Source of the DNA: Macrostomum lignano
Lineage: Eukaryota
DNA: 64,000 nucleotides
NCBI GenBank assembly: GCA_002269645.1
Contig: NIVC01002128.1
Location: forward strand, 138,202 to 202,201
Direction of reading: 5' to 3'
The position numbers were made by a program, and so were the translations under genes. The notes under the pieces were generated by a model. It saw nothing but the letters and a program-made list of their open reading frames with translations, did not search any database and was not told the DNA's origin. This document shows, piece after piece, positions 1 to 57,380 of the stretch; the first letter of the stretch is position 1, and every line of letters starts with the position of its first letter.

Positions 1-165
1 CAGCCCCAGCTGAACGAGGTGAAACTGGTTGCAGTCCTGAGGTGCTGTAGAAGCACAGGGTTGGAGTTGAAATCGCTAGCAGTGATTAAAATGTACCTAC
101 AGTTGCACTGGCTGTGCTATCAGGCGTATTTGATCTATTTTATTTTCCCCAACAACCTTTTAAAG

Positions 166-7453
<7,288 letters not shown>

Positions 7454-14189: not shown

Positions 14190-14760
14190 TCTCCTCTCCT
14201 CTCCTCTCCTCTCCTCTCCTCTCCTCTCCTCTCCTCTCCTCACCTCTCCTCTCTCCTCTCCTCTCCTCTCCTCTCCTCTCCTCTCCTCTCCTCTCCTCTC
14301 CTCTCTCCTCTCCTCTCCTCACCTCTCCTCTCTCCTCTCCTCTCCTCTCATCACCTCTCCTCTCTCCTCTCCTCTCCTCTCCTCACCTCTCCTCTCCTCT
14401 CCTCTCCTCTCCTCTCCTCTCCTCTCCTCTCCTCTCCTCTCCTCTCCTCTCCTCTCCTCTCCTCTCCTCTCCTCTCCTCTCCTCTCCTCTCCTCTCCTCT
14501 CCTCTGCTCTCCTCTCTTTTCCACTCCTCTCCTCTCTTCTCTTCTCTTCTCTTCTCCTTCCTTTCCTTCTTTCCTCCCATTCTCCTATCCCTTCTCACCT
14601 CTCTTCTCTCCTCTCTTTTCGCCTCTCCTCGCCTCTGGCCCCTCGCCTCTCCTTTCTCCTTTCTTCTATCCCATCTCCCCTCTCTATTCTCTATTCTCGC
14701 AGCCCTGCGCTGGGTTCCCTACCAGGCCTTTGAAGTAAAAAAGTTACTAAAGTGGGCCAA
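14190..14760 (+). mobile_element. Partial copy of the hAT-Charlie/MER58-like MITE family with a (CTCCT)n core
   Basis: 3' signature GGCCTTTGAAGTAAAAAAGTT matches the copy ending at 39759; core is an expanded CTCCT pentamer; 5' TIR not recognisable. Confidence 0.55.
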
Positions 14761-14899: not shown

Positions 14900-17556
14900 A
14901 TGGCATCCGGTAGGGCCACATTCCTTTGCCCATCGGAGATCAACTACATCTCCAAACTGGACGCCGAGGCCAACGAGGACTGTCGACGACGCCTAAACGA
15001 CGTTGACTTGGCCGAGTACTCGCGCAGGCTGCTCAGCCACAACTCCGGCTACCCGAAACTGCAGGTGGCGCGTCGCAACGGTCAGTGGTACGCGCTGAAC
15101 AGCCTGCACCTGACCATCTGCCAGCACATGCAGCGGAGCGGACGATGCCGCCGCGTGCGAGTTGTCATCTGTCCGGACCGGCTGCTGCCGCAGAGTCTGG
15201 GCAGTCGGCTGATGCCTGGTGAAGGTAGGGACCGGCTCTGACCGCACCTGCGTCAATAATAATTGCAGGAATTGTGGGCCCCTGGCGCCGTGTCTTCGGT
15301 TGACATGGTTCCACAGCCAGAGCTGAGGCAATTCTGCCCATTCCGCAGACTTGACCTGCTGACACAGTGTCGGATAGATGATCTGTAAATCTACTTGACC
15401 TGCTGACACAGTGTCGGATAGATGATCTGTAAATCTACTTGACCTGCTGACACAGTGTCGGATAGAGGATCTGTAAATCTACTTGACGTGCTGACACAGT
15501 GTCGGATAGATGATCTGTAAATCTACTTGACCTGCTGACACAGTGTCGGATAGATGATCTGTAAATCTACTTGACCTGCTGACACAGTGTCGGATAGAGG
15601 ATCTGTAAATCTACTTGACCTGCTGACACAGTGTCGGATAGATGATATGTAAATCTACTTGACCTGCTGACACAGTGTCGGATAGATGATCTGTAAATCT
15701 ACTTGACCTGCTGACACAGTGTCGGATAGATGATCTGCAAATCTACTTGACCTGCTGACACAGTGTCGGATAGATGATCTGTAAATCTACTTGACCTGCT
15801 GACACAGTGTCGGATAGATGATCTGCAAATCTACTTGACCTGCTGACACAGTGTCGGATAGAGGATCTGTAAATCTACTTGACGTGCTGACACAGTGTCG
15901 GATAGATGATCTGTAAATTCTGGAGTTCATCATAACTCAGAGATACTCCAATCCAGTTGAGTTTCACAGTTGAAGAGTTTGGATTTTTTTGGGGGTGGGG
16001 GAAGATGGATCAGACAGTGCTGCCATGTGTAAATAATAACTCAGATATATTACGACTATATACTTCGCAGGCTGTGTGATAAATTTTCTCACAGCTCAAG
16101 GAAATATTTACCGTTACTTTGGTATCTTATCTTTCCTCTCTTTCTTTCCTGCTTGACTCGGGGATCTGTTTTTATTTACATTTTTCTGCTCTAAAATGAC
16201 GAGGCGCAGGATCAGGGTCCCGGACAGCTAGGCGAAAGGGACTTGGCCCAGTTACAGGCTCGGCGGGCACAACAGTACGGATTCACTTAGAGATTGACTC
16301 CGAAAAGTTTGGCCGAGGGAAAGGATTTATTTCTGGTCTCATAGGGGGGCAGTTTTTTATGTCATTTTCTCTAATATTCGCCTCAGGGACCGGCCGGGGC
16401 TCGGGACACGCTGGCCGAATTTCCTTCGCCCGTCTGCCTGCCTGCCTGCCCGCCTTAGTTCTCTCAGTTCTTGTGTCTTTCTGTTGCCCCTCATTTCCCT
16501 GACTACAAATGCAAAGAAACGGATCTAAATATCAGCATCTGGCAGGACTGAGTGTCCCTCCTTATGCTGTGGCACTCATTGGAGCACGATACGCTCCGAG
16601 TTGCCGTCTCTGTCCAATGCGTTCGAAAAGAGTTGTTGCGGAAAGAGGAAGTTTCTGGGTGCCAATAAGTACGAGCTATTGAGTACTTTCTGGAGGGAAA
16701 ACTAGTCGTAGTAAGGAAGTGACTTTGATAAGTCAGTTTGATTTTGCAAGTGACTTTGAGAGAAAATATTATAATGACCAGTCAAAGTATATGCCATGAA
16801 AGGACCTCACAGATGAGTCAATTTAACGTTCGATGGAACGTTTATACTGAGCCCTCGGTTGAGGACCTCTTGTATGAGTACTTAGAACTCTCGGTTCAAG
16901 ACATCTTAACATTGAACTATCGGTTCACGACATCATGTACATTGGACTCTAAGTTCAGGACATCTTGTACATTGGACTCTCGGTTCAGGACATCTTGTAC
17001 ATTGGACTCTCGGTTCAGGACATCTTGTACATTGGACTCTCAGTTCAGGACATCTTGTACATTGGACTCTCGGTTCAGGACATCTTGTACATTGGACTCT
17101 CGGTTCAGGACATCTTGTACATTGGACTCTCGGTTCAGGACATCTTGTACATTGGACTCTCGGTTCAGGACATCTTGTACATTGGACTCTCGGTTCAGGA
17201 CATCTTGTACATTGGACTCTCGGTTCAGGACATCTTGTACATTGGACTCTTGGTCCAGGACATCTTGAAAAGTAAAACATCAGTCAAGGGCATTGTGTAC
17301 GAGCTCGTACATTAGGTGTACCTTTTGCTAAAACGAAAACCTCCAAGAAAACAAAAACAGAAGACAGTTTTTCTTCAAGGTGAAGCTGCCTTCGATCCTT
17401 CGTATGTTGAAGCAGCAGTTGCATCAAACTGAGACACTTAAACCACCTTGCCACGCATTGTTTTAGACACGAGGCCATCGACAAGCAGAAACCGTCGACC
17501 AAGGAGCAACAACGAACAACAATTCGCCAGCAGTGCAAGCAGCATCAGCGAGAGCA

Positions 17557-17587
<31 letters not shown>

Positions 17588-18696
17588 TGGAAGCGGCAAC
17601 ACTGCTGGAAGCAGTAGCAGCAGCAGCGGCAGCAGTAGCAGCCGCAGAGGCAGCTACCGGCCAGCCAAACGCGGCCCAAAAGACTTCAGCGACGAAGAAG
17701 ACACGGAGGACGACTGCTCAGCGTCTGGAAGCTTCTGCAGCGAGTGCGAGTCGCTGGAGGCCGCCGGCAGGGGTCACCTCCGCAGACGCTGGCAGAGACG
17801 CCGTCGAAGGCGTCCGACTGTAGCTGCGACGGCCGGGGCGGCAGAGACGACGAAGGGTAGCGTTGGAATTGCCGGGATATCCTTAGGTGAGCACTTCGAT
17901 AGTTTTCTTGTTTTAGTCGCCGTTTCTTTTGCAGCTTCAGGTATTGCAATTGCGTACTGCTTAAAATAAACATACGAGCTAATATCTAAACAACACCTGA
18001 GTAGTCCATGGTTGCAAAAGATTTGTCTGCATGTTGTGTGTCCTTAACAGTATAATAAGATCTGCTGGTACACCTGTGGTGGAGGCAAACCAGATGACGC
18101 GTTTCAGAAAACAAGTTGGCACATAAAACCAGAAAATGACACTCCGTACGCGTACGGTCCTGCAGCGGCGGCTGAGGGTTTCGCAAATTAACCGCAAGGA
18201 CAACTAGAGTTTTACGTCACATCAGTCTAGATATCCTTTATTGACCAAACCTCACGGTGCATCATATGACGTGTCAGATGATGACAAAGACATACGAGCG
18301 TACATGCAGTTTTACTAGGACCAAGCTTAACTAGATCGAAATTTCACCAGCTGTTAATCGTGCGCAGTGAAGATTGTACGTGTTTTTTTATCTCTAGTGA
18401 CGATTTCTAATTTCGAGCTGTTGAAGTATTCAGTTTGCGTAACTTTGAGAATACGTCTCGTTGCCGGGCAAGATGACGTGTCTCAGAGCACCAGCATCAG
18501 ATAAGTACGTGAACTGTTCGGAGTAAATTAATTTCAAATGGCTTTCTTTGCTTCCGCAGTTGCCTCTTCCACCGAAAATGCTGCTGAAGAAGGGGCTTGT
18601 CAGAACAGCCAGCAACAGCAGAAGCTGCAGCAACATCCGGGTCCGAAAGACACCGATGCAGAGCCGCAGCATCCCGAGTTTCAAGCGCTACTGTAA
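14900..18696 (+). CDS. Uncharacterised 293-aa protein: N-terminal ParB/Srx-like domain (tentative) followed by Ser-rich, acidic and Arg-rich disordered tail. Exons 14900-15224, 17467-17886, 18560-18696
   Basis: GC-rich coding-like exons; GT-AG junctions are all phase 1 and sum to 882 nt (294 codons, stop TAA). A candidate 5'UTR exon ends at 13450 (AG|GTAAGA) with acceptor at 14836. The domain call is by remembered resemblance only. Confidence 0.7.
15347..15916. repeat. 44-bp minisatellite (ACTTGACCTGCTGACACAGTGTCGGATAGATGATCTGTAAATCT), about 13 copies, intronic
   Basis: Period 44 read directly (GACACA at 15361 and 15405); no spacers. Confidence 0.97.
16925..17266. repeat. 30-bp minisatellite (CGGTTCAGGACATCTTGTACATTGGACTCT), intronic
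   Basis: About 11 near-identical copies; degenerate copies extend upstream to about 16830. Confidence 0.97.
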
Positions 18697-19024: not shown

Positions 19025-19700
19025 GGGTGCTTCTCAGTCTGTCAGAGTGCCTCTCGGTCTGTGTCTGTCAGAGTGCTTCTCAGTCATGTTTCAGAGTGCT
19101 TCTTAATTTGTGTATCTGTCAGAGTGCTTCTCAGTCTGTGTGACTGTCAGAGTGCTTCTCAGTCTGTTTGTTTGTCAGAGTGCCTCTAAATCTGTGTCAG
19201 AGTGCCTCTCAGTCTGTGTGTCTGTCAGAGTACTTCTCAGGTTATGTGTCTGTCAGAGTGCTTCTCAGTCTGTGTGTTTGTCAGAGTGCTTCTCAGTCTG
19301 TGTGTTTGTCAGAGTGCTTCTCAGTCTGTGTGTTTGTCAGAGTGCTTCTCAGTCTGTGTGTTTGTCAGAGTGCTTCTCAGTCTGTGTGTTTGTCAGAGTT
19401 CTTCTCAGTCTGTGTGTTTTTCAGAGTGCTTCTCAGCCTCTTTCCGAGTGCTTCTCAACCTCTTACAGAGTGCTTCTCAGTCTGTGTGACTGTCAGAGTG
19501 CTTCTCAGTCTGTGTAACTGTCAGAGTGCTTCTCAGTCTGTGTGACTGTCGGAATGCTTCTCAGTCTGTGTCAGTGCTTCTCAGTCTGTTTCAGAGTGCC
19601 TCTCAGCATGTGTGTTTGTCAGAGTGCCTCTCAATCTGTGACTATCAGAGGGCTTCCCAGTCTGTGTTTCAGAGTGCTTCTCGGTCTGTATCAGTGTGTT
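19025..19700. repeat. 28-bp minisatellite (TCAGAGTGCTTCTCAGTCTGTGTGTTTG)
   Basis: More than 20 variant tandem copies. Confidence 0.93.
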
Positions 19701-20404: not shown

Positions 20405-21914
20405 ATGCCAAAAGACATCAAGCACAGACTTGAGCGGGCCAGACAAGCCGTAGCCAGTTGGTTGCCACACCAGGACGACAGCAGCGGCAGGTACGGCCGA
20501 AAACGCATCTCAACGCCGCAGCTGGTCAAGCGAACGCTGCACGTTAGCTACGACTCTCTGTCGGGCACTTATCAGGGCGTGCCGCAGAGGTGGCTACCGG
20601 AGTTCAACAGCCGCCTACTGGCGCACCCGTCAGGAGCTAAACAGTCCATCATGTCCTTTGCGTCGTTGCCAGCTTCGTCGGTGCTTTCCGTTGGCGCAGC
20701 GGCTGCAGAGTCGACGACAGACCGAAGAGAGGCCTGGACGGACTCGCCTCCGCCCACGCCGCCATCGCGAATGAGCCTGGGCAGGACGTACGACGGTGCT
20801 GCCAGTGCGGCTCAACAGCAGCACCAGTCGCGATGGAGCTCGGTAAGAAGCTTCAGTTTTCCTCATAGTCAGACAATGTACAACACATCATGTGCGCTGT
20901 GGACCCCAGATCGATTTTAATGCATAAACTTTTTACTCTATTCGAGGCAGGGGCTGTTCACCCTGGCGCAATTTAGGCGACATTGTCACACAAGCGGCGA
21001 GAGGCATTACTGCCCATTTCGCCGACTCCCATGAGCAGGCACGCAATCGCACGGATACGTACGCAGTCATACGCACAGGCACACACTCACACAGGAGTGT
21101 ACAGCGGCCCTGACTTTATTTATCGTTAGGCATGTACACTTCACTGCGCCTTGGGGGTTGGGCCTCAAGGGCGTTAATTGCATTCTACATGTAAGACCCA
21201 CGCTGAGAGGCTTATAAAACATATCAAAGCGTCGCACTGAACCACTAGGCTATACGGTCCCCTTCGTTCGAATGATGCACGAATGATCTGGAGTCAGTTC
21301 TAGAGACTTCGGGGCGAGAGTCGGACGTGCTTCGGCTCCGCTGCTCAAGCCTCTATACATTGCTCGTAGTGTTTAACTCTATTAAACCAATGTCTGAGAT
21401 TTTACATTTGTGTGAAATGACTGCTATATTTCAGCGATCGCGAGAATTTTCGCCTCAGACCAACCATCAGCAGCAGCCGCAACAGCAGCAGCCGCCGCAG
21501 GTTTGGTTCGACCGCTGCACTCGCCGATTCGTCAACCTGCCGCCGCACTGGCGCGAGCGACTCCAGAGGAACAACCTGACTGAGTGGTCGGAGTTCCAGC
21601 GAAATCCCGCGCTGCTGACCACCGTGTTCACCATGATGGACGAGGAGCTTCGGAAGATGGACCTCTCCGAGCTGGGTTTGGACTCCAGCGTGCACTCTTC
21701 AGTAGAGACGACCGCGCCCGAGGAGCCGGGACCGAGAAGCAGCAACTCCACCGCGATCAATGCCGACAGTCGCGCTGTATCGACTGAGGAATCCAACGGA
21801 CCGCAGCCGCCAGCGCCAGCAGCGCCGTCAGCAAGAAGCTCCTTGGTGTGGCGTCAACAGCGAAGCTTCGTCAGAGACGACGATAGCGACAGTGAAGAGT
21901 TCGTCGAGATTTAG
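20405..21914 (+). CDS. Kinase-less protein (about 305 aa) with two degenerate PAK-type PBD/CRIB-inhibitory-switch modules. Exons 20405 (possibly from 20261)-20842 and 21435-21914
   Basis: Module 1 ISTPQLVKRTLHVSYDSLSGTYQGVPQRW; module 2 VWFDRCTRRFVNLPPHWRERLQRNNLTEWSEFQRNPALLTTVF. Both match the remembered PAK motif ISxPxxFxHxxHVGFD..tG.ftG.P..W..LL..snIt..e..knPqav. Phase-0 intron 20843-21434; stop TAG. The frame stays open back to an acceptor at 20260. Confidence 0.75.
20944..21182 (-). mobile_element. tRNA-derived SINE family A, 5'-truncated copy in the intron of the PBD gene
   Basis: Strong identity to 51157-51390 and 53597-53710 (CCCATT(T/C)CGCCGACTCCC..GAGCAGGCA..CGGATACGTACGCAGTCA); head missing. 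Confidence 0.85.
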
Positions 21915-22488: not shown

Positions 22489-23585
22489 ACACCTTTTCAC
22501 GTTCAATTCAAGGACAACTTAAGTAGAAGGACGCAACACTCGAAATCTGTGGTAAATGTTTTGAAGGCAACTTTTCGCCGAAAAATACACCACTGAGATA
22601 GGAGGTTTTCATTTTTTCAGCACAAAAATTGTTATTGCTTTTGATAGGAGGCAGATCCAGTGTTCATCTTTTGATATGCTGTGCCTTTCTCATTGCTTTA
22701 TCGATATTTATAAAGCTTTTCGTTTATAAATAGTTTTAAAGGCAGGTTTCATCGGAGGGGTACACTATGGAGATAGGAAATTCCACGATTTTCAACACTG
22801 GAACAGTGATTGGGTCTCTTAACAGTGTCAGAGAAAGTCCTAATCACACTATTTGTGCCTCACATGCTGCTCTAATGACGCATTAATCGATTTTTCATGT
22901 TAAATTGGTCTGTCACTTGAAAAAACTTTTAAAACAATGACAAGAACAATTTAACATGAAAAATCGATTGATGCGTCGTTAGAGCAGCATGTGAGGCACA
23001 AAAAGACTTTCTCTGAAACTGTTAAGAGACCCAATCACTGTTTTAGTGTTGAAAATCGTGAAATTTCCCATCTCCGTAGTGTGTTTTTCCGGTGAAACCT
23101 GCCTTTAAAACTATTTCCGAACGAAAAGCTTTATGAATATCGATAGAGCAATAAGAAAGGCACAACATATCAAAAGATGAACACTGGATCTGCCTCTTAT
23201 CAAAAGCAATAACAATGTTTGTGCTAAAAAAATTAAAACCTCCTATCTCAGTAGTGTATTTTTCGGCGAAAAGTTGCCTTCAAAACATTTACCATAGATT
23301 TTGAGTGTTGCGTCCTATATATATGTTACTTGAGTAGTCCTTGGTTCAATTTTGATCAAAGTCCAGTTCTAATTTTGATCAAAGTCCAGTTCTAAAAAAA
23401 CTAGCGGAAATTCAATTCAGACTGGTGAAAATTTTGTCTATGGCTAAACCTTGCTTCGGTGGCAGAATATTTTGAACTGGGGTTTGTTTTTATTGATTTC
23501 CCGTAAGCGTTGCCCCAGTCTGAATTGAATTTTCGCTAGTTTTTTTGGAACTGGACTTTGATCAAAATTGAACGTGAAGAGGTGT
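22489..23585. mobile_element. Fold-back / long-TIR non-autonomous DNA element with a nested 230-bp hairpin (23344-23573)
   Basis: Arms about 22508-22908 and 22947-23343 are reverse complements with scattered mismatches; outer ends ACACCTTTTCACGTTCAATT / AATTGAACGTGAAGAGGTGT. Confidence 0.85.
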
Positions 23586-25755
23586 TGCTACAGATTACCA
23601 CTAAGGTCAGAAACATTAAAGTCGAATTCAACCCCACCCCCCTAATTTGACCCAGAGTCCAATGTCTATGGGAATAATGTACTGAGTACTTTCTCGCTCC
23701 TGAAGCCGTGATGTCGTCGAAGCACTATGTCTGTGGCCAAAAGTCTCATTCTCTGCGTAAATGTATAAACGGACATGTAGGAAGGCCGTCCTACATACTT
23801 ATTCTTTATAAGGTATCTCGATAATTTTCCTATTATGTCACCTGTTAATTTATCAGATTGTCATCTAATAAACTTAGTGCCAAACCCCCTACAAATTCCG
23901 TTAGTACACAGCTTAACCAAGTATTGTACTGCTTAAAATCTTAAATTAGCTGACTTACTTGTACAAGAATGCACGTTCACGAAACCTTTAAAGATTGGGT
24001 GGCCTTGAGATTGTATATTTTTACATAGCTTTTGACAATACTCAAATGCACTAATATTGATAAATATACAGTATACAGGTAAACTCAATAACAAACAACT
24101 CCTAATGACGCAAAAATGATTTATGACAATTTCTGTTTTTTGTATTTCTGAAAAAGTTTCTTAAAATTTATTTCATATAGTCAAAAACTCGTGTAAGAAA
24201 GCAAGGAGAGAGCAGAGAGAATCGCCAAAAATGTATGCAAATAATATTTTCAGTGTTATCATAACAGCTATAAGTGATGATTTTTTTAAGAGGCATGGAC
24301 TAATCGGTAGGGCAATTGTGGCAAGCAAGTCGATAATCTCTTTAACAGCGCAAGTAGAGATGGAACAGAGAAAAATAGCATCATATATAATATTATAATT
24401 AGTATATAGCGATGTAGTTAAAGCCAACAAACTATTCCAACAGATGCAAAAAATACTGCCTTTTTAGTCGTTTATTATTATTTATTATTAATATTTACAT
24501 CATAAAGATGTGGCTCTGTACGGCTGAGTATTATGTAGTCCGGATGTAAGCACAGCTTGATTTCATAATTAGTAAAGTAATTTATGTAAGCACATGTGCG
24601 CTAAAAGTGACTTGCCATCATTAAATGAGTTATCAAAGGTATTAAAAAAACTGCAAAAGATACATCTACACACCAAAGCACTAATATCTGAGAAACTTTG
24701 TTAAGCAATTAATATGGTTACGTAATCAGTATTACTCCTAATTATACAATACAGTGCGAAAGATCACGCTTAACTTGAGTAATGAATTAACTTGAGTCAT
24801 CAACTTGCTTAAAGTCTGTTAAACTTCAAACAAACAAACAAGTACACAACACGCTACTTTAAGTAGGCAAATGTCTAAATAAATCATAATTAAAGAAACA
24901 ATAAAAAATTCGAGGCACTATGAAATAATATTTCATAATAACTACTTATAACAATAATTTTAGCATGACAAAAGCAATTATAACTTAGGCGCTAAAAACT
25001 CAGGCATATCTATAGCAAGGATAAAGAATATACTAAACTATGTACAAAATTTTCTCCTAATACAATTGGCTGCCCAGTGAGACCAGGCCCAGATGACAGT
25101 CAAATAAAGTCAGTTATTAAGCAGCACCGATGCAGAGCTGCTATCGAATTTGTCAGTCAAGTTGAATCCTATTGTTTCGCTGAGCTATGCACTGTGTATT
25201 TATTGGGGAATAAATGGTATATATTCGCCATTTATACCAGTGCTAGGGCAATAAATGCTTGAGTGACTTGTTTATTGACCGAGGCTGCACAGAGAAATAA
25301 ACCGATTATTTGCACCGATGCAAATAAATGAAATTTACACTGAAGACCATAGACGTTCGACCGGGGCAAGTGGTGGATACATTAGTTTCTGTAGTCTATG
25401 GCCAGGCCCAATTAGCCCGCTGAAAACGGTACCCAGGCCGAGAAACATGGATGAAGGAATACACTGGATTGCTCATCTGAAATAGTCTATGGTCGAATTC
25501 TTTCCTCCAAACTTGGAATTTACCCCCCTAGGAATCTATTGGCTGATGAAAGTTAAAAATAATCCCCCGTAGGACTTGATTGGCTGCTGAATCAGTCTAT
25601 CAAATACATCTTTGGATTTCCCTCAAATTTTCAAATTTCCATGACTGATACAGTCTGCGTTAAAGTGCATGACCGGCTTTATAGTCTATGGCATCTAGTG
25701 GCTGTTGTCTAATTATCAACTTCACCTGACAAAAGCAACGCTTAGACCGAACTGC

Positions 25756-28700
25756 CTACAGATTGTAGGCTACATAAATTGGATCCAACTTGTCGTCAAG
25801 GAACCCGTCTCTGAGGTGCATCCGCTGTTTCTCGCCGCGGCTGTTCAGCGGGATGGTGCGCGGATCGCAGATCACGATGACGCCAGCTATGAGATGGTGC
25901 TCCTCCAGGATGCTCGAAGTGATTAGCGGGATTAGGTCGAGCGATTCGAACTCTTTGCCATTGAGTTCGGCCACGACAACAAGCAGGGAGCGCCAGGTGA
26001 ACACGGCGCTGCCAAATGCGGTTTGGGTTGGTTTTAAATTGGCGCCACACGTTCTTGTTATAACTACAGTGATAGCTCTGTACTACAAGTCCACCTTCAA
26101 GCCTTCAGTGGAAATCACAAAATCCATTTAGGCCTTTAGGAACCGTCACTAAATGCACTCAGCCACTCACATTCCTGCAGGTCGTTAATGAACACTGCTA
26201 CCGCCCTACCCTCAGGCTCTTAGAGAAAACAGAACAGCTCCTACAGTATAAACTGTGACCTTCAGGTGGATACTGCTACCCCCCCTTATACTCAGGCCTT
26301 CAGGTGCCCCCCCCTATACTCAGGCCTTCAGGTGCCCCCCCCCTATACTCAGGCCTTCAGGTGCCCCCTCCCCTATACTCAGGCCTTCACGTGCCCCCCC
26401 CCTTATACTCAGGTCTTAAGGTGAACACTGCTACTCCCCTATACTCAGGCCTTCAGGTAAACACTGCTACTCCCCCCCCAATATTCAGGCCTTCAGGTGA
26501 ATACTGCTACTCCCCCCCCCCCTATACTCAGGCCTTCACGTTCCCCCCCTTATACTCAGGCCTTCAGGTAAACACTGCTACTCCCCCCCAATATTCAGGC
26601 CTTCAGGTGAAAACTGCTACTCCCCCTATACTCAGGCCTTCAGGTGGCCACTGCTACTCCCACTATTCCCAGGCCTTCAGGTGGACACTGCTACCCCTCT
26701 ATACTCAGGCCTTCAGGTGGACACTGCTACCCCTCTATACTCAGGCCTTCAGGTGGACACTGCTACCCCTCTATACTCAGGCCTTCAGGTGGACACTGCT
26801 TCTCCCCCTATACTCAGGCCTTCAGGTGGACACTGCTATCCCTCTATACTCAGGCCTTCAGATAATCACTACCCCCCCCCCCAATACTCGGGCCTTCAGG
26901 TGGCCACTGTTATCCCCTCATACTCAGGAATTATCAGAGTGCAATTAAAGCAACAATTCCCCAACAAGCTACTGTCAGTAGCAGAATCGCTCACCACTCG
27001 CAGACGGTGTGATGACAGCGCACCACCGTGGCCTCAATATCGCCAGGATGATATCGCAGGCCGCGCAGCTGGATGGCTTCGTCCAGAGCGCCAACCAGAA
27101 ACACGGCATCGTGACGAGAGCCGTCAACAGCCGTGAGGTCGGTTCGCTTCACGAAGCCCAGGTAGCCGGTTCGGCAATAGCGGACTGAGGTATCGCCTCC
27201 GGCAGTCAGGCAGGCATTGAAGTGGTCCCTGGCGCTGGCGGGGTCCACGGCTCCGGAGGTGTCGGTGTCGCCGCCGCCGAAGCCGCTGCCTAGCAAGGCG
27301 CAGTACCCGGATGCGCTGTGACCCGCCGCGACCCAAATCTCGCCCAGATGAGAATCGGCGCACTGAGTTCGAGTCTCCGGGTTGGCGATCACCACTCGGG
27401 TGCCGCAGAGCAGCTGGCCGCATTCCGACAGGGGCAGCGAGCCCGGGCTGCCCCGGTCCACCAGCTGCACTCGGTCCTGCGGCATCAGGGACGGGTTGGG
27501 TGCCGGCTGTCCAGCTGCCTCAACCTTTATCTCCCTCCGTCTCACCCTTTATCTCCCTCTGCCTCACCCTTTATCTCCCTCTGTCTCACCCTTTATCTCC
27601 CTCTGTCTCACCCTTTATCTCCCTCTGTCTCACCCTTTATCTCCCTCTGTCTCACCCTTTATCTCCCTCTGCCTCACCCCTCATCTCCCTCCGTCTCACC
27701 CTTTATCTCCCTCTGCCTCACCCTTTATCTCCCTCCGTCTCACCCTTTATCTCCCTCAGTCTCACCCTTTATCTCCCTCTGCCTCACCCTTTATCTCCCT
27801 CTGCCTCACCCCTTATCTCCCTCCGTCTCACCCTTTATCTCCCTCTGCCTCACCCTTTATCTCCCTCCGTCTCACCCTTTATCTCCCTCAGTCTCACCCT
27901 TTATCTCCCTCTGCCTCACTCTTTATCTCCCTCTGTTTCACCGTTTATCTCCCCCTGCCTCACCCTCAGTATCGTCTGTATCTCACCCTGTCTCCCCTAG
28001 GTCTGCCCTCAATCTCACTCTCGCTCTCTCTCTACCCTATCTCACCCTCTCTCTCCACTCTGTTTCACCGTCCTTCTCCACTCTACCTGACCTTCTCTCT
28101 ACACTCTTAACCATGTACCCATCTCTCTATCTGCCATTTGTTTTCAGACTCTCCTTCCTTCTCACCCAGCTTCTCATCGTTCTCATCCTCACCTGGCGCA
28201 GCGCGGCCGCGTCCACATAGACGGTGCTGCACTCCGGCGACGAGGCGCCCTGCAGGCAGATGCACGCATTGACCCGGCACCCGAAGCTGGCGCTGAGAGC
28301 GGAGGCTTTGAGGCCCAACGGGCTGAACAGCTTGCTGAAGCTCTGCAGCAGACCGAGGCGGGGCCGCTCCTCGGCTACGGCGATTAGCGACCGGAGACTC
28401 GACAGGCTGACTTGAAGCTTTTGCTGCACAGGGTATAGGGAGAGATAGGGAAATAGAGATAGATTTGGGGATAATTAGGGATTACAGAAAATGGGGATAA
28501 TCGGGGAAGACAGAAAATGGGGATAATCAGGGATAACAGAGAATTGGGATAATTTGGGAATACAGACAATGGGGATAATCGGGGATAACAGAGAATTGGG
28601 ATAATTGGGAAATACAGACAATGGGGATAATCGGGGATAACAGAGAATTGGGATAATTGGGGAATACACACAATGAGGATAATTGGGGAAGACCGACAAT

Positions 28701-31700
28701 CGGGATAATTGGGGAATACACAATGAGGATAATTGGGGAAGACCGACAATCGGGATAATTGGGGATAACAGAGAATTGGGATAATTGGGGAATACAGACA
28801 ATGGGGTTAATCGGGGATAACAGAGAATTGGGATAATTGAGGAATACAGACAATGAGGATAAATGGGGAAGACAGACAATGAGGATAATTGGGGAAGAAA
28901 GACAATAGGGATAATTGGAGGATTCAGACAATGGGGACAATTGGGGAGACAGATAATGGGAATGATTGGGGAAGATTATTTGGCATCAGTTTGACAGTAA
29001 AAAGAAGCAGGGAAGATTAGGAAAACCGATGAAGACAATAAAAAAAACCTCACCTTGAGCAGGTCCAGCTGCTGGGCCAGCTGCGAGGCGCACAGGTCCA
29101 ACACTGGGTAGCTGCAGAATGCGTCCCGGATTCCCCGCTGACTGACGGCGAACAGAAATGCCGCAGGGGAGGCCTCAAGCTCGGCGGGAGGCAGCAGCAC
29201 AGTGTGATGCCCGGTGTACACTGAGCACAGGCACCAGAGCGCGAATGACAGGCCCGAGTAAGGGTCCAGACACAGAGCAATCTCCCTGGTTGGGTACAGC
29301 TCGCACTGCAGTTTGACAGCTTTGCACAGGTGCACAGCGGCTCTATGGGTGACTCGAACTCCGGATAGCAGGCCCGTAGTGCTGATGGAGAAGTCTAAAT
29401 AAGCGTCGGAGTCTGGATGCGCCGGGGCCGGCTGCTGCTGCTGATGCTGAACCTTCCGCTTGTCGTCAATGTCAACAACCGGAGGCCAGGAGTTCGCGGC
29501 CTGCTGGTGATGACTGAGCAGGGCTTTGAGCAGCTTAGCGGTAGGCTGATTGGTCAGCAACAGAGAGGCTTTGCTAGCCTGCAGGACGGCTTGGCAAGCT
29601 GGCAGGCCCTGATGCCCGATCGTCTGGTTGCCGCTGCCCACTGTTGAACTGCCCGACAGGCTGGACGATGAGGAGGCTGCGGCTGATGAAGAAGACGGCG
29701 GCGGTCGCATAGCAACTGGGAGGCAGCCGGCGTAGAAGCAGCCGAAGACGCCGACAATAAGATCAAGTCCTGGCGGCAGCATCAAAGCCACAGCGTGCTG
29801 CTGCTGCTGGTCGGTGCTGAGCGACTGCGGCAGGCGGGACCGCAGCAGGGCGGCGAGTCTCTCGGCCCGTTTGTGCAGCCCCAGCGCGGTGAGGCACTGC
29901 TCAGGCTGAGCAGCCTGCGGCCCCACCAGCTTGCCGGCTGACAGCACAGTGAACAGGCGCTGGTCCGGGTCCCGGCTCCGAGCTCGCAGGGTGTCGGCGA
30001 GGCTCATCCAGCCGCCGCCGCCGCCGCCGCCCTGCTGCTGCTGAAGCGCATCGTCTGGCATCGGGCGGCCTTCGGCTTCGGCAAGGCGAGCACCCTGGAC
30101 CAGGGAGCCGACCATCATTGACAGCGGCTCGGCGCTGGTGGCCTGCCGCGGCTTGGGCAGGTTGGTGACGGTGGAGTGCGGGCACATCAGGATGTTGGCC
30201 GGGTGCAGCTGGCCGGCCGCGAACCTGCGGCGGGTCTCGTGCGAGTTGATGCCGCCCAGGGGACTGCGAGGCAGCGAGTTGGGCGGCACCAGGGCGATGC
30301 AGTAGACTCCGACCTGGGCGAAGAATTGTAAGACTTGCGCATGTTAGCTTGCCGCTCTACTACAAGTAGGTTAACTGCGCGTAAATATAAATTACGATAC
30401 AGGACCAATCCTGAAGGATTCTTCAGAATATTTCAGAATAGTATAAAGAAAATCACAGAGGAAGCTTTGAGAATATCGCAAGTGAACTTTTGAGGGTGTC
30501 TATCTGGAATTCTTGAAGAATCTTGAAGAATATCTAAAAAGAATTCTTGTATTCATCAATATCTTAGGAAACTTCTGATGGGTTTCTCAAGGAGAATTCT
30601 GGGGAATATCTCTTGGAGAATTCTGATGGGTAATATCTGAATAAGAATACTGAGTAATTTCTCTTGAGGAATTCTGTAGGAATATCTCTAGGAGAATTTT
30701 GAGGGATATCTCAAGGAGAATTCTAGGGAAATATTTAAACGACTTGAGAAGTCTAGGGGAACATCTTAAGAATAATTCTAGGGGAATATCTCAAGAATAA
30801 TTCTAGGGGAATATCTCAACGAGAATTCTAGGGGAATATCTCAAGAAGAATTCTAGGGAGTATCTCAAGGAGAATTGTAGGGGAATATTTAAAGAATACT
30901 AGGGCTCAAGGAGAATACTAGGAAAATATCTCAAGAAGTCTAGGGGAATATCTCAAGGAGAATTCTAGGGGAATATCTCAAGAAGAATTCTAGGGGAATA
31001 TCTCAAGGAGAAGTCTAGGGGAATATTCCAAGGAGAATTCTGGGGAATATCTCAAGGAAAATTCTAGGGAAATATCTCAAGAGAATTGTAGGGGAATATC
31101 TAAAGAATACTAGGGGAATCTCAAGGAGAATACTAGGAAAATATCTCAAGGAAAATTATAGGGGAATATCTCAAGGAGAAGTATAGGGGAATATCTCAAG
31201 GAGAAGTCTAGGGGAATGTTCCAAGGAGAATTCTGGGGAATATCTCAAGGAAAATTCTAGGGAAATATCTCAAGAGAATTGTAGGGGAATATCTAAAGAA
31301 TACTAGGGGAATCTCAAGGAGAATACTAGGAAAATATCTCAAGGAAAATTATAGGGGAATATCTCAAGGAGAAGTATAGGGGAATATCTCAAGGAGAAGT
31401 CTAGGGGAATATTCCAAGGAGAATTCTGGGGAATATCTCAAGGAGAATTCTAGGGAAATATCTCAAGAGAATTGTAGGGGAATATCTAAAGAATACTAGG
31501 GGAATCTCAAGGAGAATTCTGGGGGAATATCTCAAGGAGAATTCTAGGGGAATATCTCAAAGAGAAGTCTAGGGAAATATTCCAAGGAGAATTCTGGGGG
31601 AATATCTCAAGGAGAATTCTGGGGGAATATCACACGCAGAATTCCGTGGAATATTTCAGGGAGAATTTTGTAGGAATATCTCAGAGCAGTCTGTCTAATT

Positions 31701-43517: not shown

Positions 43518-45684
43518 AGAGAAATTAGAAGAGATAGAAAGAAAAGACAAAAGAAGAGAAAGGAGAGATAAGAGACCAAAGACAAGAGAGAAGGGAGGAG
43601 AAAGTTGAGAGAAGAGAGAAGAGAGGAAAAAAAGAGAGAGGAGAGATAAAGGAAGTGTGGAGTGTGGAGAGGGAAAAACGAGAGAAGAGGGAAGAGAGGA
43701 GAGAAGAAAAAGATAGGAAACAAAAAAGAAGATAAAAGCTTCAAAGGATCCAAAGGACATAGAGAGAGGTAGAGGTAGAGGGCAGAGGCCAGAGTTTGCC
43801 TGACATTCTGCGCAACACCCCAGCCAACAATATCAATCCTTGCTTCAAATCCTAATTTTACACAAGTGTACTCTATTTTACGTTTAACTCTATCCTAACT
43901 ATTAACAAGTTTTTGTTTGAGTTTGACCTCAGATTTTAGAATACATGCAAAAATAATTCTGGGGAATAGAGTTCTCCAGGTTCAAAATCCACAGGTTTCA
44001 ACAGCTTGTAATATTTATATGATTATGCATATGACATATGAAGGATATTAAAAAAATAATAAGAATTTCCAACCTAGGCTTGGCCTAGGTTTTTTTCGTC
44101 CAAAATCCAGTTGCCAAATGGCAACTGGAGCTCAAAATATAGTTGCCAATTGCCATCCTTAGTTGCCAATTGGCAACTGACCTATTTTAGTGTCCCATTT
44201 TATAAAGTTGTTTTTCCAACAATTTTCACACATTGACAAAAAAATAATATGCTCAAATCAGCTTAGGCTTCAGGTTTTCAGCCAAGCTAATCTTAGCAGT
44301 AATAAAATGTTACAGACTGTTTTATCATTGGCAACTGCCTTGGTTCAAGTTGGTTGCCAGATTGGCCTCTAATGCCACAAATCCAGTTGCCAGTGGCTTT
44401 TTTGGGTAGCCAGTGGCTACCATATGGCCTAAAAAACCCAGGGCTTGGCCTAGCTTATACTATAGCTATACTCAAATCTATTACATGGTGCAACCAAAAA
44501 AGTGACCCTTTAATTTTATACTATAAGGCATTGAATTCAAGTTTATACTAGAAAAATAGATTTACTTGTGATATATATGTTGATCATTATCAAAAAGGTA
44601 TTGCAACAATAAAGGAAATTTTGGTATTATAATATTTCTGTCTTTTGTATTCTAACAGTTATGCCATAGGCTATAAGGCACAATTTTCTTGTAGATTATT
44701 CTATATGCTAGATATTTACACCAACTATTTTTTATGTCCATTGTAGGTCTATAGTAGACTTTTTTGATATATATATAAGACTGATAATAGTCCATTTTAG
44801 TGACAAGTCATTTTGTTTTGGCAACAACCTTTTTGGCAACAAGTCATTATGGCCACAAACAGATGAAATTGTTGATATATTCCATTATAAACAAATTGTA
44901 ATGATCTCTGCCTCTTACTCTATGTCTTATTGAAAGTCCTATTATATAATAAATGTAAAAGTTATTGTGAAGTAGAAAAAATGAAAAAAAGTTAATTTTT
45001 AAGTGTAAATTTCAAGCTTTTTAGTTTTTTCAAGCTTGTAAAAACATTTAAACAAATCTTTAAATATATATTGATTTTCTTCTATAAAAAGTATTGCCAA
45101 AAAAGCATAAAAATCAACCAAATATCTGCTAATAAGGGTCTATTACACAATTTAAAAAAGGTCAGTTATTGTCACAATGTAAAAAGTCATTTATTATCGC
45201 AACACGGTCTATGTATTTTTGAGAATGGGATGCACTAATTTTTTTTGGTGTGCATTTGTTATTATTCAATTTTTGTTTGGGCATGCACCCAGCATGATTC
45301 AGACTATGGAATGACTTGTCACTAAAATGGTTGTCACCTAAATGGTTTGTTGCCAAAATCAACCAGATTAAAAAAACTTGGGAATGAGGGCTTATAGTTG
45401 GATTATAGAATAATATAGATGGTGCTAATGTGAAATTTAAGTGGCTTTATCTATCTATATCTATCTATCTATCTATCTATCTATAATACTTTTTTTTAAT
45501 TCAAAAGTTGAAGTCATATTTAATCATATTCACAATGTCAATGAAGAATGTTTAAATTTTTAAAATAATTTTTACAATTTTTATTTGCAAAATATATCTT
45601 ACCATCAGATAACTCAAGCTCTAATTCGGCAAGCTTAGCTCGAACATCCAAAGGCAGCCGTGATGTATCTATTTCTGCAGACAT
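25756..45684 (-). CDS. DIP2: Disco-interacting protein 2 homolog (DMAP1-binding domain plus two adenylate-forming domains), complete, 1808 aa. Exons 45684-45603, 40756-40328, 38164-36747, 35962-34955, 32001-31738, 30313-29054, 28423-28193, 27476-26995, 26008-25756
   Basis: N-terminus [34 protein letters not shown]; motifs [80 protein letters not shown]; C-terminus [26 protein letters not shown]. Eight GT-AG introns; exon lengths total 5427 nt, divisible by 3. Confidence 0.96.
26275..26930. repeat. Variable-unit minisatellite (CCCCTATACTCAGGCCTTCAGGTG +/- GACACTGCTAC) in DIP2 intron 8
   Basis: Core TATACTCAGGCCTTCAGGT recurs about 20 times. Confidence 0.92.
27522..27965. repeat. 22-bp minisatellite (TCACCCTTTATCTCCCTCTGCC) in DIP2 intron 7
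   Basis: About 20 tandem copies. Confidence 0.95.
28455..28975. repeat. Composite minisatellite (GGGGATAATTGGGGA / ACAGAGAATT / ACAGACAAT units) in DIP2 intron 6
   Basis: Recurrent GGGATAAT motif with a higher-order pattern. Confidence 0.9.
30560..31680. repeat. About 25-bp minisatellite (CTAGGGGAATATCTCAAGGAGAATT) with higher-order duplications in DIP2 intron 5
   Basis: About 40 variant copies; longer blocks recur, e.g. from about 31010 and about 31205. Confidence 0.93.
32140..32478. repeat. GA-rich minisatellite (GGGAGACAGAGGGGAAGGCGGTGA), left part; resumes at 33787-33960 after the P-like insertion
   Basis: The same 24-bp unit lies on both sides of the insertion. Confidence 0.85.
32479..33786 (+). 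mobile_element. P-element/THAP9-superfamily DNA transposon, internally deleted and decayed, in DIP2 intron 4
   Basis: Perfect 23-bp TIRs CACAGACCATATAGAATATAGAC; 8-bp TSD AGGGGAAG (32471-32478 and 33787-33794); frameshifted transposase remnant at about 32870-33230 ([30 protein letters not shown] / [11 protein letters not shown] / [13 protein letters not shown]). Confidence 0.85.
34783..34950. repeat. (GACA)n microsatellite abutting the donor of DIP2 exon 4
   Basis: Seen directly. Confidence 0.95.
35985..36716. repeat. About 23-bp minisatellite (TCTTGATTGGATGGGATTTTTAA) filling DIP2 intron 3
   Basis: About 30 copies occupying nearly the whole intron 35963-36746. Confidence 0.96.
38425..39759 (+). 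mobile_element. hAT-Charlie/MER58-like MITE with about 1 kb (CCCTATTCCCCTCTC)n core in DIP2 intron 2
   Basis: 5' part CGGCAAACC..CTCTATCCGGCCCTCAGGTCCTTTCAAACTT matches the 46510 copy; 3' end CTGGCCCTTGAAGTAAAAAAGTTTGCCCACCACTG. Confidence 0.8.
40810..41050. repeat. About 21-bp minisatellite (GACTGACATGACCCACAGCTA) near the acceptor of DIP2 intron 1
   Basis: About 5 clean copies that decay downstream. Confidence 0.8.
41603..42300 (+). mobile_element. Possible Helitron/DINE-like non-autonomous element; boundaries uncertain
   Basis: Starts ATCTATACATATAAAAATCAAAACTCTGTCTGT followed by CAAACCACTCAACCAAATTATACCAAACTTT, resembling the remembered DINE-1/Helitron-N layout; a similar fragment lies at about 53515-53590. 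No 3' hairpin confirmed. Confidence 0.35.
42746..43810 (-). mobile_element. hAT-Charlie/MER58-like MITE with about 900-bp GA-rich core in DIP2 intron 1
   Basis: CAGGGATTGGCAGATTTTTATCTCCAAGGCCAG...CAGCTCATGGCTGTGGGCC matches the family 3' end as in the 22097 copy; the right end reverse-complements to a degenerate 5' TIR (CAGAATGTCAGGCAAACTCTGGCC). Confidence 0.75.
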
Positions 45685-50706: not shown

Positions 50707-52627
<1,921 letters not shown>

Positions 52628-54596: not shown

Positions 54597-56071
54597 TTAA
54601 ATCCCACCCAATGTGTCCATCAGCAGTTTGAACTCCTGAAAGTCCACAAATCCGTCCTGATTTTTGTCCGCTTGTCGGATCATCTCATTAACGTCGCTCT
54701 CCGTCAGATTCTCGCCCAGGCTGTTCATAACGTAGCGCAGCTCCTCCGAACTGATTTTGCCGTCATTGTTCTTGTCAAAGATTTTGAACACCTTTCTCAG
54801 CTCCTGTTCCGTGTCGGTTTCGCGCTTCTTCTTCTCCATCATTTCTACGAACTCTTCAAACTCAACGTAGCCCTTTTTCTTGTGATCGACGTCGCTAATC
54901 ATTTTCTGAAATTGAGGTTTGTTTGAAAAAGTTTTTTAACAATATATAGAGGTAACTTTCTGGGTTTCTAACCGCTGCTTAGAAGGGCTGTGTGGTCACT
55001 CGTGTGACCCAGAACTGCCCAGGCCAGTAATGGTATCTGGCCCCTCCACATTTAATGTAAAATTTAGGCTTTTTGCTTATTTTTGATTTTTGCTGCTTTG
55101 CACGAATGCATTTTGCTGCAGAGCGACAAAAAATAGCGCCTGCAGCGCGCCAAAATGAGTGCCTGGGGCGCTAAAATGAGTGCCTGCGGCGCTAAAATGA
55201 GTGCCTGTGGCGCTAAAATGAGTGCCTGTTGGCGCTAAAATGAGTGCCTGTGGCACATTTTGACGCTGTGCACGTTGCCGAACTAGCAAAAGCAACTTCA
55301 TAATCCTCGTACAAGTACAGTGTGCATTTGTTAGGCTATAAACTACACAGGCTCCCAACTATTAACCTGCAATATTTGTTTGACGTGAACACAAGACCTT
55401 TAAATTGGCAACGGGTGCGTCGACAAAACTGTTGAATTGTCGCAATCTCCTGCTGGCTGTTAGGCTGTAAGTCAATACGTCATTTAAGAAGCGAAGCAAA
55501 ATCTGATGAAGCGATAGAAAGGATGCTGGCGCAGCAGGCGCCCAACCAGGGAAGAAGATTCTGTCGGGTCGCGGCCTTTAGCCGTCTATTCGCGTGCTTA
55601 CCTCGTAATTACGAGCGTATCTTCGCCTCTTCGTTAAATTTCTATCGGCGGCGATGTCTCACAAAGGCGCAAGACAGAAATGTCCAGAATGTCTTCAAGT
55701 ACGCTGTATGACTCATAAATATTCTCATACGGCAGTGTCACTTGATATGAATTGAGCAATAATGTGCCACGAGCAGAGTATTCGGTGGGCTTAGTTATAA
55801 CTATACTAAAATATTACACTAAAACTACACTGAAAATTTAAACACACGCAGGTAAAACGGGTACAGAGTGGTTATTGTAAGATTTTTAGAGCAGATAAGG
55901 TTCAACCAAAAGCACATCCCTCACCTGTATGTCGGCCTCAGTGGGATTCTGTCCCAGATTGCGCATGGCAACCCCAAGCTCGGCCGGGGTGATCTTGCCG
56001 TCGTTGTTCTTGTCGAACAGCTTGAACGCTTCCTGATACTCGGACACTTGGGCCGGGGTTAAAGACTGCAT
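54597..56071 (-). CDS. Calmodulin-like EF-hand protein, 151 aa. Exons 56071-55925 and 54905-54597
   Basis: [49 protein letters not shown]|KMISDVD...[37 protein letters not shown]; calmodulin layout but too divergent to be canonical CaM; phase-0 intron. Confidence 0.92.
55140..55256. repeat. 21-bp minisatellite (GGCGCTAAAATGAGTGCCTGT) in the CaM-like intron
   Basis: About 5 tandem copies. Confidence 0.9.
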
Positions 56072-57380
56072 GATTGGCCTCTCTGATTGATGGCAAAGCA
56101 AAGTCTGATTACCTAACCGCGCGAGCTGGAAAATTAATATGACTTGTTGGATTTCTGCAAGAGTAAAACTGCTTTCATTCTGGACCCCACTAGCTAATGT
56201 TATTAGCGCGAATTTATTCTCTTCTCTGCCTGTCTGTATGCCTGCAGTGCACAGCCAGCAACTCATTTTCGTTACCAAGAGAAACGGGGTAGAGATTGGG
56301 CTGAATGACTGGAGTTGTGCGCATGGTGGCTGAGCTGCATGAGCTTGAGGAGGGGGTGGTGGCAGCCCGCTCTTCACCCCAGCATTCTTACTGTCTGCCT
56401 ATATGCCATGCAATGAATAAATTGGCTGCTGCAGGCATGAATGTGCGGCCTTCATCTGACTGTACGGTAAATGAAGTTTAGACTTGTTCTGTCCTATTTT
56501 ACTTTATTGCAGTACCGGTATAGGCGATTACTTAAAAAATCTTTTAAAAACGCAAATCACAATCGAAGAAGGTCTATGCAAGATAGTCGTAGATCCGCTT
56601 TGACAAGCTTACCAAACGTCTGGATGATGTCGAATTCCACCGTTGCGGTTGTTCAACCTGTTTTTCAGTACAATTTTTTTACTTTATGCGATATAGGAAG
56701 CTTCAATGGAAAGAGAAACGGCGCCCAAACCAGCAATTTTAAGCTTGGAAATTTCCCAACTTTTTGTACAGGCGCCCCTAGAATTGGCTGGCGCAATGCA
56801 GTACAAAACGGCTGACCAAATTCTGACTGACAATTGTCAAAATCCTCATTCCGACAAAGCCCCAGGCTGCATCCCAGCAGGACTCCCACTTTTCTCTTAC
56901 AGCTTTCCATATTTCTACATTTGCTTCTGTAAGTTGGACAAGAATGCAAAAAACATTTGCGCCAATGCCCGGGTGACGGGCCCGACAGCCCCCACGCAGC
57001 TTCCTTCATCACTAGCCTCTCTCTCGTCTTCCTTCCAACGGTGCAGTGTCTCTCTGCCCCAACGGTTTCGCTTCTGTCTCTCAGTCAGTTTTGGCCACTC
57101 CGGCCATACATGCTACAAAGATTTGCATGCAGCAGCGCTGAAAAAAGGACATTTGGTTAAGAACAGCGGCCGGAGCTTAGCGAAAAAAACAGATCCTGTC
57201 CGGCGAGGGGTTGGGAGGCAAAATGGCTAGAAATTAAAGCGACTGGCGCACTTCGCTTTCCGCAAGTCAAGTCGCCACGGCTTCGGCTCCCACCCCCGCT
57301 GCGCATCAATGCAGACACCGCAGTCTGTCCTGCAGGATCGAAGCACAGGGGAAAATTTAGCAGCTGGACTCGCCTGAACG

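Follow-up and report, generated by a model that had tools for sequence, protein, structure and literature searches.

Can the regulatory region of a p21-activated kinase (PAK) exist as a gene product of its own, separate from any kinase domain, and what could such a protein do in Cdc42/Rac signalling? The question is raised by Mlig011799.g1, a two-exon gene at positions 20405-21914 of a 64,000-nucleotide (nt) stretch of Macrostomum lignano contig NIVC01002128.1. This whole stretch is called the window in the following, and positions refer to it unless another sequence is named. The gene is real and transcribed, and it encodes a kinase-less protein with two PAK-type regulatory modules. Profile comparisons identify both modules as homologous to the p21-binding domain (PBD) of group I PAKs; the first contains a variant CRIB motif, and the second is a CRIB-less copy that matches the inhibitory switch. 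Codon comparison with an orthologue indicates that the gene is under purifying selection.

Gene model and absence of a kinase domain

The window is 100% identical to NIVC01002128.1 of the Mlig_3_7 assembly over 21.7 kb, and its gene is listed as Mlig011799.g1 (BOX15_Mlig011799g1), with the GenBank product PAA60647.1 ("hypothetical protein, partial"; P0014) and the UniRef entry A0A1I8JHG2 ("CRIB domain-containing protein"; P0001). The two plus-strand exons (Table 1) yield a spliced product of 305 amino acids (aa), whose exon junction (RWSS followed by RSREF) and stop codon are identical in both database entries. No in-frame ATG precedes position 20405 in the window gene, and the ATG of an orthologue, which aligns with the one at 20405, follows an in-frame stop codon 9 nt upstream; 20405 was therefore taken as the start. 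The GenBank annotation of Mlig_3_7 was built from a genome-guided transcriptome obtained by RNA sequencing (RNA-seq; PMC5730564), so that the model behind PAA60647.1 reflects transcripts.

The orthologue is encoded by an intronless 990-nt contig from another sample (L001; Logan SRR28338165). Its 264-aa product shares the start, both modules and the ending ...SDSEEFVEI, which is followed by the stop codon and a 3' untranslated region, and the window intron is absent from its continuous open reading frame (ORF). The identity to the window protein is 48% by BLASTP and 61% in a MAFFT alignment. The RNA-seq-derived GenBank model and this contig end at the same codon (...EEFVEI), in agreement with the ORF end at 21914 given in a preliminary description of this DNA. 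An AATAAA signal is absent on the plus strand from the stop codon to position 23867, which is uninformative on the 3' end.

No kinase domain was detected in the 64-kb window by tblastn with the PAK1 kinase domain (best E-value 0.53, in low-complexity sequence), and Pfam gave no Pkinase match in the 305-aa protein. No kinase gene lies within 10 kb of the paralogue loci Mlig032438 and Mlig019290 either. The next annotated gene is convergent and encodes two AMP-binding domains; its coding sequence ends about 3.8 kb downstream (at about 25756), it spans 25756 to about 45254, and it is called DIP2-like in the annotation of the locus of a second gene copy (see below). The preliminary description had placed no kinase exons between the ORF and the convergent DIP2 gene, and the tblastn search bears this out. 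Since a kinase domain is absent, the window protein is not a PAK.

An alternative is that the gene is a decaying PAK fragment, or an incomplete model with its kinase exons elsewhere. A chimeric 1450-aa UniRef model (P0011), which also takes in a serine-rich 173-aa ORF upstream of the CRIB gene, could be cited in its favour because a splice near 21899 takes it from exon 2 to sequence further downstream. However, P0011 continues there into plus-strand ORFs antisense to DIP2 exons and contains no Pkinase match, and kinase similarity is missing from the whole 64 kb. The same model and another UniRef entry (P0002) join exon 1 to an internal acceptor AG at 21643-21645 (RWSS followed by ELRKMD). Use of the acceptor at 21645 would delete aa 147-216 in frame, a segment that includes most of module 2.

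Homology of the two modules to the p21-binding domain

The whole protein was matched by the Pfam PBD profile (PF00786) with 34.4 bits (E-value 2.8e-8), above the gathering cutoff of 21.3 bits, which assigns it to the PBD/CRIB domain class. The profile check that the preliminary description had proposed thus returned a PBD match. With the Pfam scan run to E <= 10, no other family was found in the protein. Compared by hhalign, the two modules align along the hairpin with a probability of 85%. In the AlphaFold2 (AF2) model, only aa 41-70 (hairpin and helix) and aa 171-226 (hairpin and three helices) are predicted with confidence (predicted local distance difference test, pLDDT, 70-80), and the remainder of the protein is predicted to be disordered.

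Module 1 corresponds in sequence to the minimal GTPase-binding part of PAK, consisting of the basic patch, the CRIB strand, the hairpin and the first helix. The stretch from ISTPQLVKRTLHVSYD to GVPQRW comprises aa 35-63 (20507-20593). Exon 1 alone reached 23.2 bits with the Pfam profile (profile positions 1-36), and a module 1 profile searched against PDB sequences matched PAKs in 12 of 12 cases (1EES_B, E-value 2.2e-7). AF2 predicts strands at aa 48-50 and 55-57 and a helix at aa 61-73, with pLDDT 70-80. Set against the CRIB consensus I-S-x-P-x(2-4)-F-x-H-x-x-H-V-G, module 1 reads I35 S36 T P38 Q L V41 K R43 T L H46 V47 S48; it retains I, S, P, the second H and V, and has V for F, R43 for the first H and S for G. 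The arginine in place of the first histidine is invariant across the family, whose common form is ISTPQxV[K/R]RxxH[V/I]. Because all three replacements are fixed family-wide, they point to a functional variant rather than to decay.

Module 2 begins with VWFDRCTRRFVNLPPHW... at 21501, and the CRIB motif is wholly absent from it. A profile built from four family members and searched against 177,635 PDB sequences gave the PAK1 autoregulatory fragment 1F3M_A as the best match (E-value 7.8e-4, PAK1 residues 86-128). The top seven matches were all PAKs, with PAK2, PAK6, an annotated putative PAK and PAK1 following 1F3M_A. Counterparts of PAK1 W103, L107, Q108, N111 and N120-P121 are retained; L107 corresponds to L189 of the window protein. 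AF2 predicts strands at aa 170-172 and 177-179 and helices at aa 183-191, 197-202 and 204-226. In Foldseek searches with the full model and with module 2 alone, PAK4, PAK1 and PAK2 structures ranked first at E-values of 0.2-0.9; with module 2, the top structures were PAK1 1F3M_A and full-length PAK2 9M41_B. Because these E-values are not significant, the fold match is regarded as consistent with the homology and was not counted as independent proof. For both modules, the preliminary description was accurate: the CRIB-like module with arginine as the first histidine lies exactly at 20507-20593, with R43 verified, and the segment without the CRIB half that matches the PAK inhibitory switch starts exactly at 21501, with the family profile leading to 1F3M_A.

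Outside the two modules, residues A17 and S18 of the N-terminal helix and residues S290 and V292 of the C-terminal tail are invariant in the family. The PTPPSR motif between the modules may serve as an SH3 ligand, as its PxxPx[R/K] form suggests. The C-terminal R-x-S-[LF]-V motif was considered as a PAK substrate or pseudosubstrate site and rejected, because the preference of PAK sites for basic residues at -2/-3 is not met consistently across the members.

Purifying selection

The ratio of non-synonymous to synonymous substitution rates (dN/dS) was calculated for the window gene and the L001 orthologue by the Nei-Gojobori method; since dS (about 1.24) is near saturation, the values are approximate. 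The overall ratio was 0.26; module 2 had the lowest value (0.11), followed by module 1 (0.30) and the linkers (0.35-0.46). Constraint is strongest in module 2, where 27 of 70 alignment columns are invariant across the paralogues. In the C-terminal tail, three non-synonymous differences from the orthologue stand against nine synonymous ones. This pattern excludes a neutrally decaying fragment. Further points against a PAK fragment or an incomplete model are the common stop codon of the GenBank model and the L001 contig, behind a tail that is among the best conserved parts, and the intact ORFs of the same architecture in three paralogue groups. In its favour, codon 30 is a premature stop in the second copy of the gene. 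Taken together, this explanation is highly improbable. The preliminary description had suggested the orthologue search and the dN/dS analysis, and had named three outcomes that would speak against a functional protein: splicing into a kinase domain, no PBD match, or an unexpressed locus evolving neutrally. All three were examined, and none applies.

The Macrostomum family and the second gene copy

M. lignano contains at least three paralogue groups, namely the window gene, Mlig032438 (351 aa, P0004) and Mlig019290 (286 aa, P0005), all of them kinase-less. A common layout unites P0003, P0004 and P0005 with the window protein: the N-terminal helix is followed by the variant CRIB, the PxxPx[R/K] motif and a CRIB-less module 2 with the pattern FVxLPPHW..RLxRNNL..NPxLLxxVFxxMDxEL, and a kinase domain is missing. 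Family members are already listed in UniProt and GenBank as "CRIB domain-containing" or hypothetical proteins, and the locus is thus neither unique nor unannotated. No description of Macrostomum CRIB genes or of these gene identifiers was found in the literature.

The family was found only in Macrostomum. When 1.84e9 representative proteins were searched exhaustively with an HMMER profile, and in word-indexed searches, the only matches outside this genus were a stramenopile PAK (P0006) and a spurious bacterial repeat protein (P0007); as canonical PAKs miss the E-value at this database size, remote relatives sharing only the short PBD could be missed. Within the window, tblastn with P0004, P0005 and P0006 returned this locus only and no second family member.

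A second copy of the window gene, Mlig018897.g1 (L006, NIVC01000070.1), is 99.3% identical, and here too the neighbour is the convergent DIP2 gene. A C-to-G exchange at the equivalent of 20494 changes codon 30 of this copy from TAC (Tyr) to TAG, and R149Q is a further replacement. Its annotated product (P0015, 223 aa) begins at Met83 and lacks module 1. Mlig018897.g1 is either a young pseudogene copy, a gene for a module-2-only product, or an assembly error.

The paralogue Mlig032438 adjoins a DIP2-family gene (the pair at L003 1-4857 and 10001-11508) at the 5' end of the latter, head to head and about 5 kb apart, unlike the window gene, which lies tail to tail at the 3' end of DIP2. Positions 4201-4517 of L003 match window positions 44942-45254 at 80%, probably as a DIP2 5' exon. 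The presence of DIP2 beside both genes suggests an old segmental duplication that included DIP2. Mlig019290 occurs twice on the 975-kb contig NIVC01000102.1 (L004 and L005), about 110 kb apart and in opposite orientation. Its intron follows both modules (at about aa 232), unlike that of the window gene and of Mlig032438, which separates module 1 from module 2.

Features of the gene and its surroundings

The features of the gene and of the remaining window are compiled in Table 1. The serine-rich ORF upstream of the CRIB gene gave no Pfam match. Minisatellites with periods of 5-147 nt and up to 20 or more copies flank the CRIB gene and fill the DIP2 introns; these arrays account for long spurious ORFs on both strands. 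The array nearest to the start codon ends about 700 nt upstream of it. About 600 nt past the stop codon lies a large inverted repeat. Sequence related to it is also present at the Mlig032438 locus (L003, 18833-19123), which makes a foldback element or an element resembling a miniature inverted-repeat transposable element probable.

Table 1. Positions of gene features, protein modules, neighbouring genes and repeats in the window
Feature	Position	Strand	Description and basis
Exon 1	20405-20842	+	aa 1-146: ATG at 20405, N-terminal helix, basic patch, CRIB-type module 1, proline-rich motif
N-terminal helix, conserved	20414-20464	+	aa 4-20, ...RARQAVASWL; AF2 helix 4-17 and alignment
Module 1	20495-20626	+	GRKR basic patch, CRIB ISTPQLVKRTLHVSYD (aa 35-50), beta-hairpin to GVPQRW (aa 63), one helix (to aa 74)
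PTPPSR, class II SH3-ligand-like PxxPx[R/K]	20753-20770	+	read off the alignment; in 4 of 4 family members
Intron	20843-21434	+	592 nt, GT (20843) to AG (21433-21434), phase 0
Exon 2	21435-21914	+	aa 147-305 and TAG (21912-21914): Q-rich linker, module 2, conserved C-terminal tail
Module 2	21501-21701	+	aa 169-235: beta-hairpin VWFD..FVNLPPHW and three helices, CRIB-less PBD copy; Pfam profile, PDB profile, AF2, dN/dS
C-terminal tail, conserved	21843-21911	+	LVWRQQRSFVRDDDSDSEEFVEI, acidic end; codon comparison with the orthologue, alignment
Muscle-type myosin heavy chain tail	1-7330	+
Serine-rich ORF	17448-17969		173 aa
Homeodomain gene	52187-52627	+
EF-hand/calmodulin-like gene	54597-56377	-
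Minisatellite arrays	14190-14636, 15349-15918, 16887-17267, 19040-19689, 26279-26928, 27515-27966, 28466-28973
Inverted repeat	22528-22839 and 23005-23316		312-nt arms, 92% complementary, 165 nt apart
Smaller inverted repeats	22849-23005, 23371-23569

Proposed function

Auto-inhibitory fragments of PAK are in wide use as artificial inhibitors. For group I PAKs, the literature searched contained no description of a natural counterpart encoded by a gene of its own. Inhibition in the PAK1 dimer works in trans, from the switch domain of one subunit onto the kinase domain of the other, and the isolated auto-inhibitory fragment (AID, aa 83-149) inhibits PAK when expressed alone (PMC3485744). The N-terminal region 1-205 of PAK is dominant negative by way of a proline motif that binds SH3 domains, and remains so when GTPase binding is lost (PMC2156168). 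Group I PAK is highly conserved in flatworms, as exemplified by the Fasciola PAK3 homologue with 80.6% kinase-domain identity (PMC12837073).

On the simplest reading, the window protein imitates the regulatory region of PAK without being catalytic, and would compete with PAK for Cdc42/Rac-GTP and for SH3 partners. Module 1 and the adjacent basic patch would bind GTP-loaded Cdc42/Rac at membranes, the PxxPxR motif would bind an SH3 adaptor, and module 2 would form a constitutively folded switch-like domain. As module 2 does not overlap the GTPase-binding site, binding of the GTPase should recruit the switch module and not unfold it. Module 2 might then dock on a partner, most plausibly the catalytic domain or the regulatory region of a group I PAK, and the net effect would be that PAK signalling is competed with or dampened where Cdc42/Rac is active. 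That the protein modulates Cdc42/Rac-PAK signalling by such binding is a tenable proposal, to which we give slightly less than an even chance. Direct inhibition of the PAK kinase in trans is a narrower claim and appears rather unlikely; if it occurs, the protein may work like the experimental PAK1 AID or, by analogy, as INKA does for PAK4.

Several observations weigh against this proposal. The double mutation H83L/H86L abolishes Rac/Cdc42 binding of PAK1 (PMC2156168), and the first histidine of this pair is arginine in module 1, so that GTPase binding by the module is only putative. Exon 2 alone scored only 13.8 bits with the Pfam PBD profile (E-value 0.073, profile positions 16-48), below the cutoff. 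In the Foldseek alignments, identity between module 2 and the PAK1 switch is low, at about 26-33%, PAK1 D126 and E129 are replaced by T, A or S, and no clear counterpart of the kinase-inhibitory segment around PAK1 K141 could be aligned in the window protein. The Foldseek matches to PAKs were statistically non-significant (E-values 0.57-0.9, template modelling score about 0.4), and the C-terminal R-x-S-[LF]-V motif fits the PAK site preference non-uniformly. Moreover, the premature stop in Mlig018897.g1 suggests that the full-length product is dispensable at one of two loci.

The protein may instead be an ordinary kinase-less Cdc42/Rac effector or adaptor, similar to SPEC/CDC42SE, BORG/CDC42EP or plant RIC proteins, without a direct effect on PAK. 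Module 1 would bind the GTPase, and module 2 would bind a non-PAK partner or the protein's own C-terminal tail, as the GBD of WASP binds its C helix. Kinase-less CRIB proteins are common, the surface positions of module 2 have strongly diverged from PAK in the profile alignment, and the N-terminal helix, an MSFASLPA block and the C-terminal tail are conserved without a PAK counterpart; the inconsistent fit of the C-terminal serine motif to the PAK preference for basic -2 and -3 residues also speaks for this reading. On the other hand, both modules are nearest to PAK PBDs and not to those of WASP, ACK or PAR6, inhibitory-switch helices in known proteins bind a kinase domain, and no BORG homology, WH1/VCA or PB1/PDZ domain accompanies the CRIB motif (Pfam, E <= 10). 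An adaptor role is therefore plausible, although clearly less than probable.

The opposite effect on PAK is conceivable as well. As an activator or scaffold, module 2 would heterodimerise with the PAK regulatory region, displace the trans-inhibitory contact and release the kinase. PAK1 autoregulatory fragments dimerise, with trans inhibition within the dimer (PMC3485744), and module 2 retains the hairpin that adjoins the dimerisation segment. However, module 2 has not conserved the strand before the hairpin, the counterpart of the PAK1 dimerisation segment (about aa 81-87), and activation by this route is quite improbable.

If the family does bind Cdc42/Rac and restrain PAK, the Cdc42/Rac-PAK switch would be wired in a new way, with recruitment and inhibition on separate modules, and the proteins would represent a naturally evolved inhibitory scaffold. 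In its strongest form, the proposal would make the family the first case of a PAK auto-inhibitory protein that occurs naturally and on its own, as a trans-inhibitor targeted by GTPases in which the GTPase-binding half and the inhibitory-switch half were uncoupled by partial duplication; we consider this form unlikely. Were it true, active Cdc42/Rac would recruit a constitutively competent inhibitory module to the place where PAK opens, a negative feedback not known in other animals. In a more extreme version, a PAK of Macrostomum would have lost its own switch domain and be regulated by the family proteins as a "split PAK". M. lignano is amenable to RNA interference and transgenesis, and the idea is thus directly testable. 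Should the protein be merely another CRIB adaptor, the result would be a lineage-specific gene family of modest interest.

Comparison with known systems

Non-catalytic proteins that read Cdc42, Rac or ROP in the GTP-bound state by a CRIB motif include CDC42SE/SPEC, CDC42EP/BORG, WASP/N-WASP, PAR6 and the plant RICs. The window protein resembles them as a non-catalytic CRIB protein. In contrast, none of those listed has a second, CRIB-less PAK-type PBD, and the window modules match only PAKs in the PDB. As no Pfam family besides PBD was found, the window protein is not an INKA, BORG, SPEC, WASP or PAR6 protein.

INKA proteins are endogenous PAK4 inhibitors that act on group II PAKs through the iBox (PMC9612522). 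INKA1 and INKA2 are comparable to the window protein in that a kinase-less endogenous protein is proposed to restrain a PAK. The sequences are unrelated, with PBD alone found by Pfam in the window protein, and INKA uses the iBox and not a switch-like fold.

Natural tandem-CRIB proteins were not found in the literature, where only synthetic biosensors were encountered. The only protein outside Macrostomum that matches both modules in one stretch is P0006, an intronless 515-aa PAK with two PBDs and a kinase domain (GCA_024449705.1, contig JAANSU012492615.1, L002 3001-4548). The first of its tandem PBDs also has arginine for the first CRIB histidine (VQRRLHV), and this CRIB variant therefore occurs in a bona fide PAK. 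P0006 differs from the window protein by its full PAK kinase domain, by a second PBD with a complete canonical CRIB and switch, and by its unrelated lineage. Its taxon was deduced solely from its nearest named relative, a protein of the brown alga Sphacelaria rigidula, and an independent duplication is most likely; tandem-PBD PAKs appear to exist in stramenopiles.

The isolated AID/PID of PAK1 (aa 83-149), an experimental trans-inhibitor, is a close parallel to module 2, which covers PAK1 residues 86 to about 133 without a functional CRIB and thus resembles the H83L/H86L PID constructs, which are inhibitory without binding GTPases. The AID is a laboratory fragment, whereas module 2, as a candidate inhibitor, is part of a natural gene and has diverged from PAK1 to the extent given above.

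Group I PAKs themselves (PAK1-3; 1F3M, 1E0A, 1EES, 9M41) are the best match of both modules with their PBDs. They share with the window protein the basic patch before the CRIB, the hairpin ending in PxxW, the equivalents of L107, N111 and NP in the switch helices, a PxxP-type motif and an acidic stretch. The window CRIB has V, R and S where PAK has F, H and G, and the window protein is without a kinase domain and without a recognisable kinase-inhibitory segment. In PAKs, GTPase binding and the switch overlap in one domain, whereas the window protein carries two partly duplicated modules about 100 residues apart.

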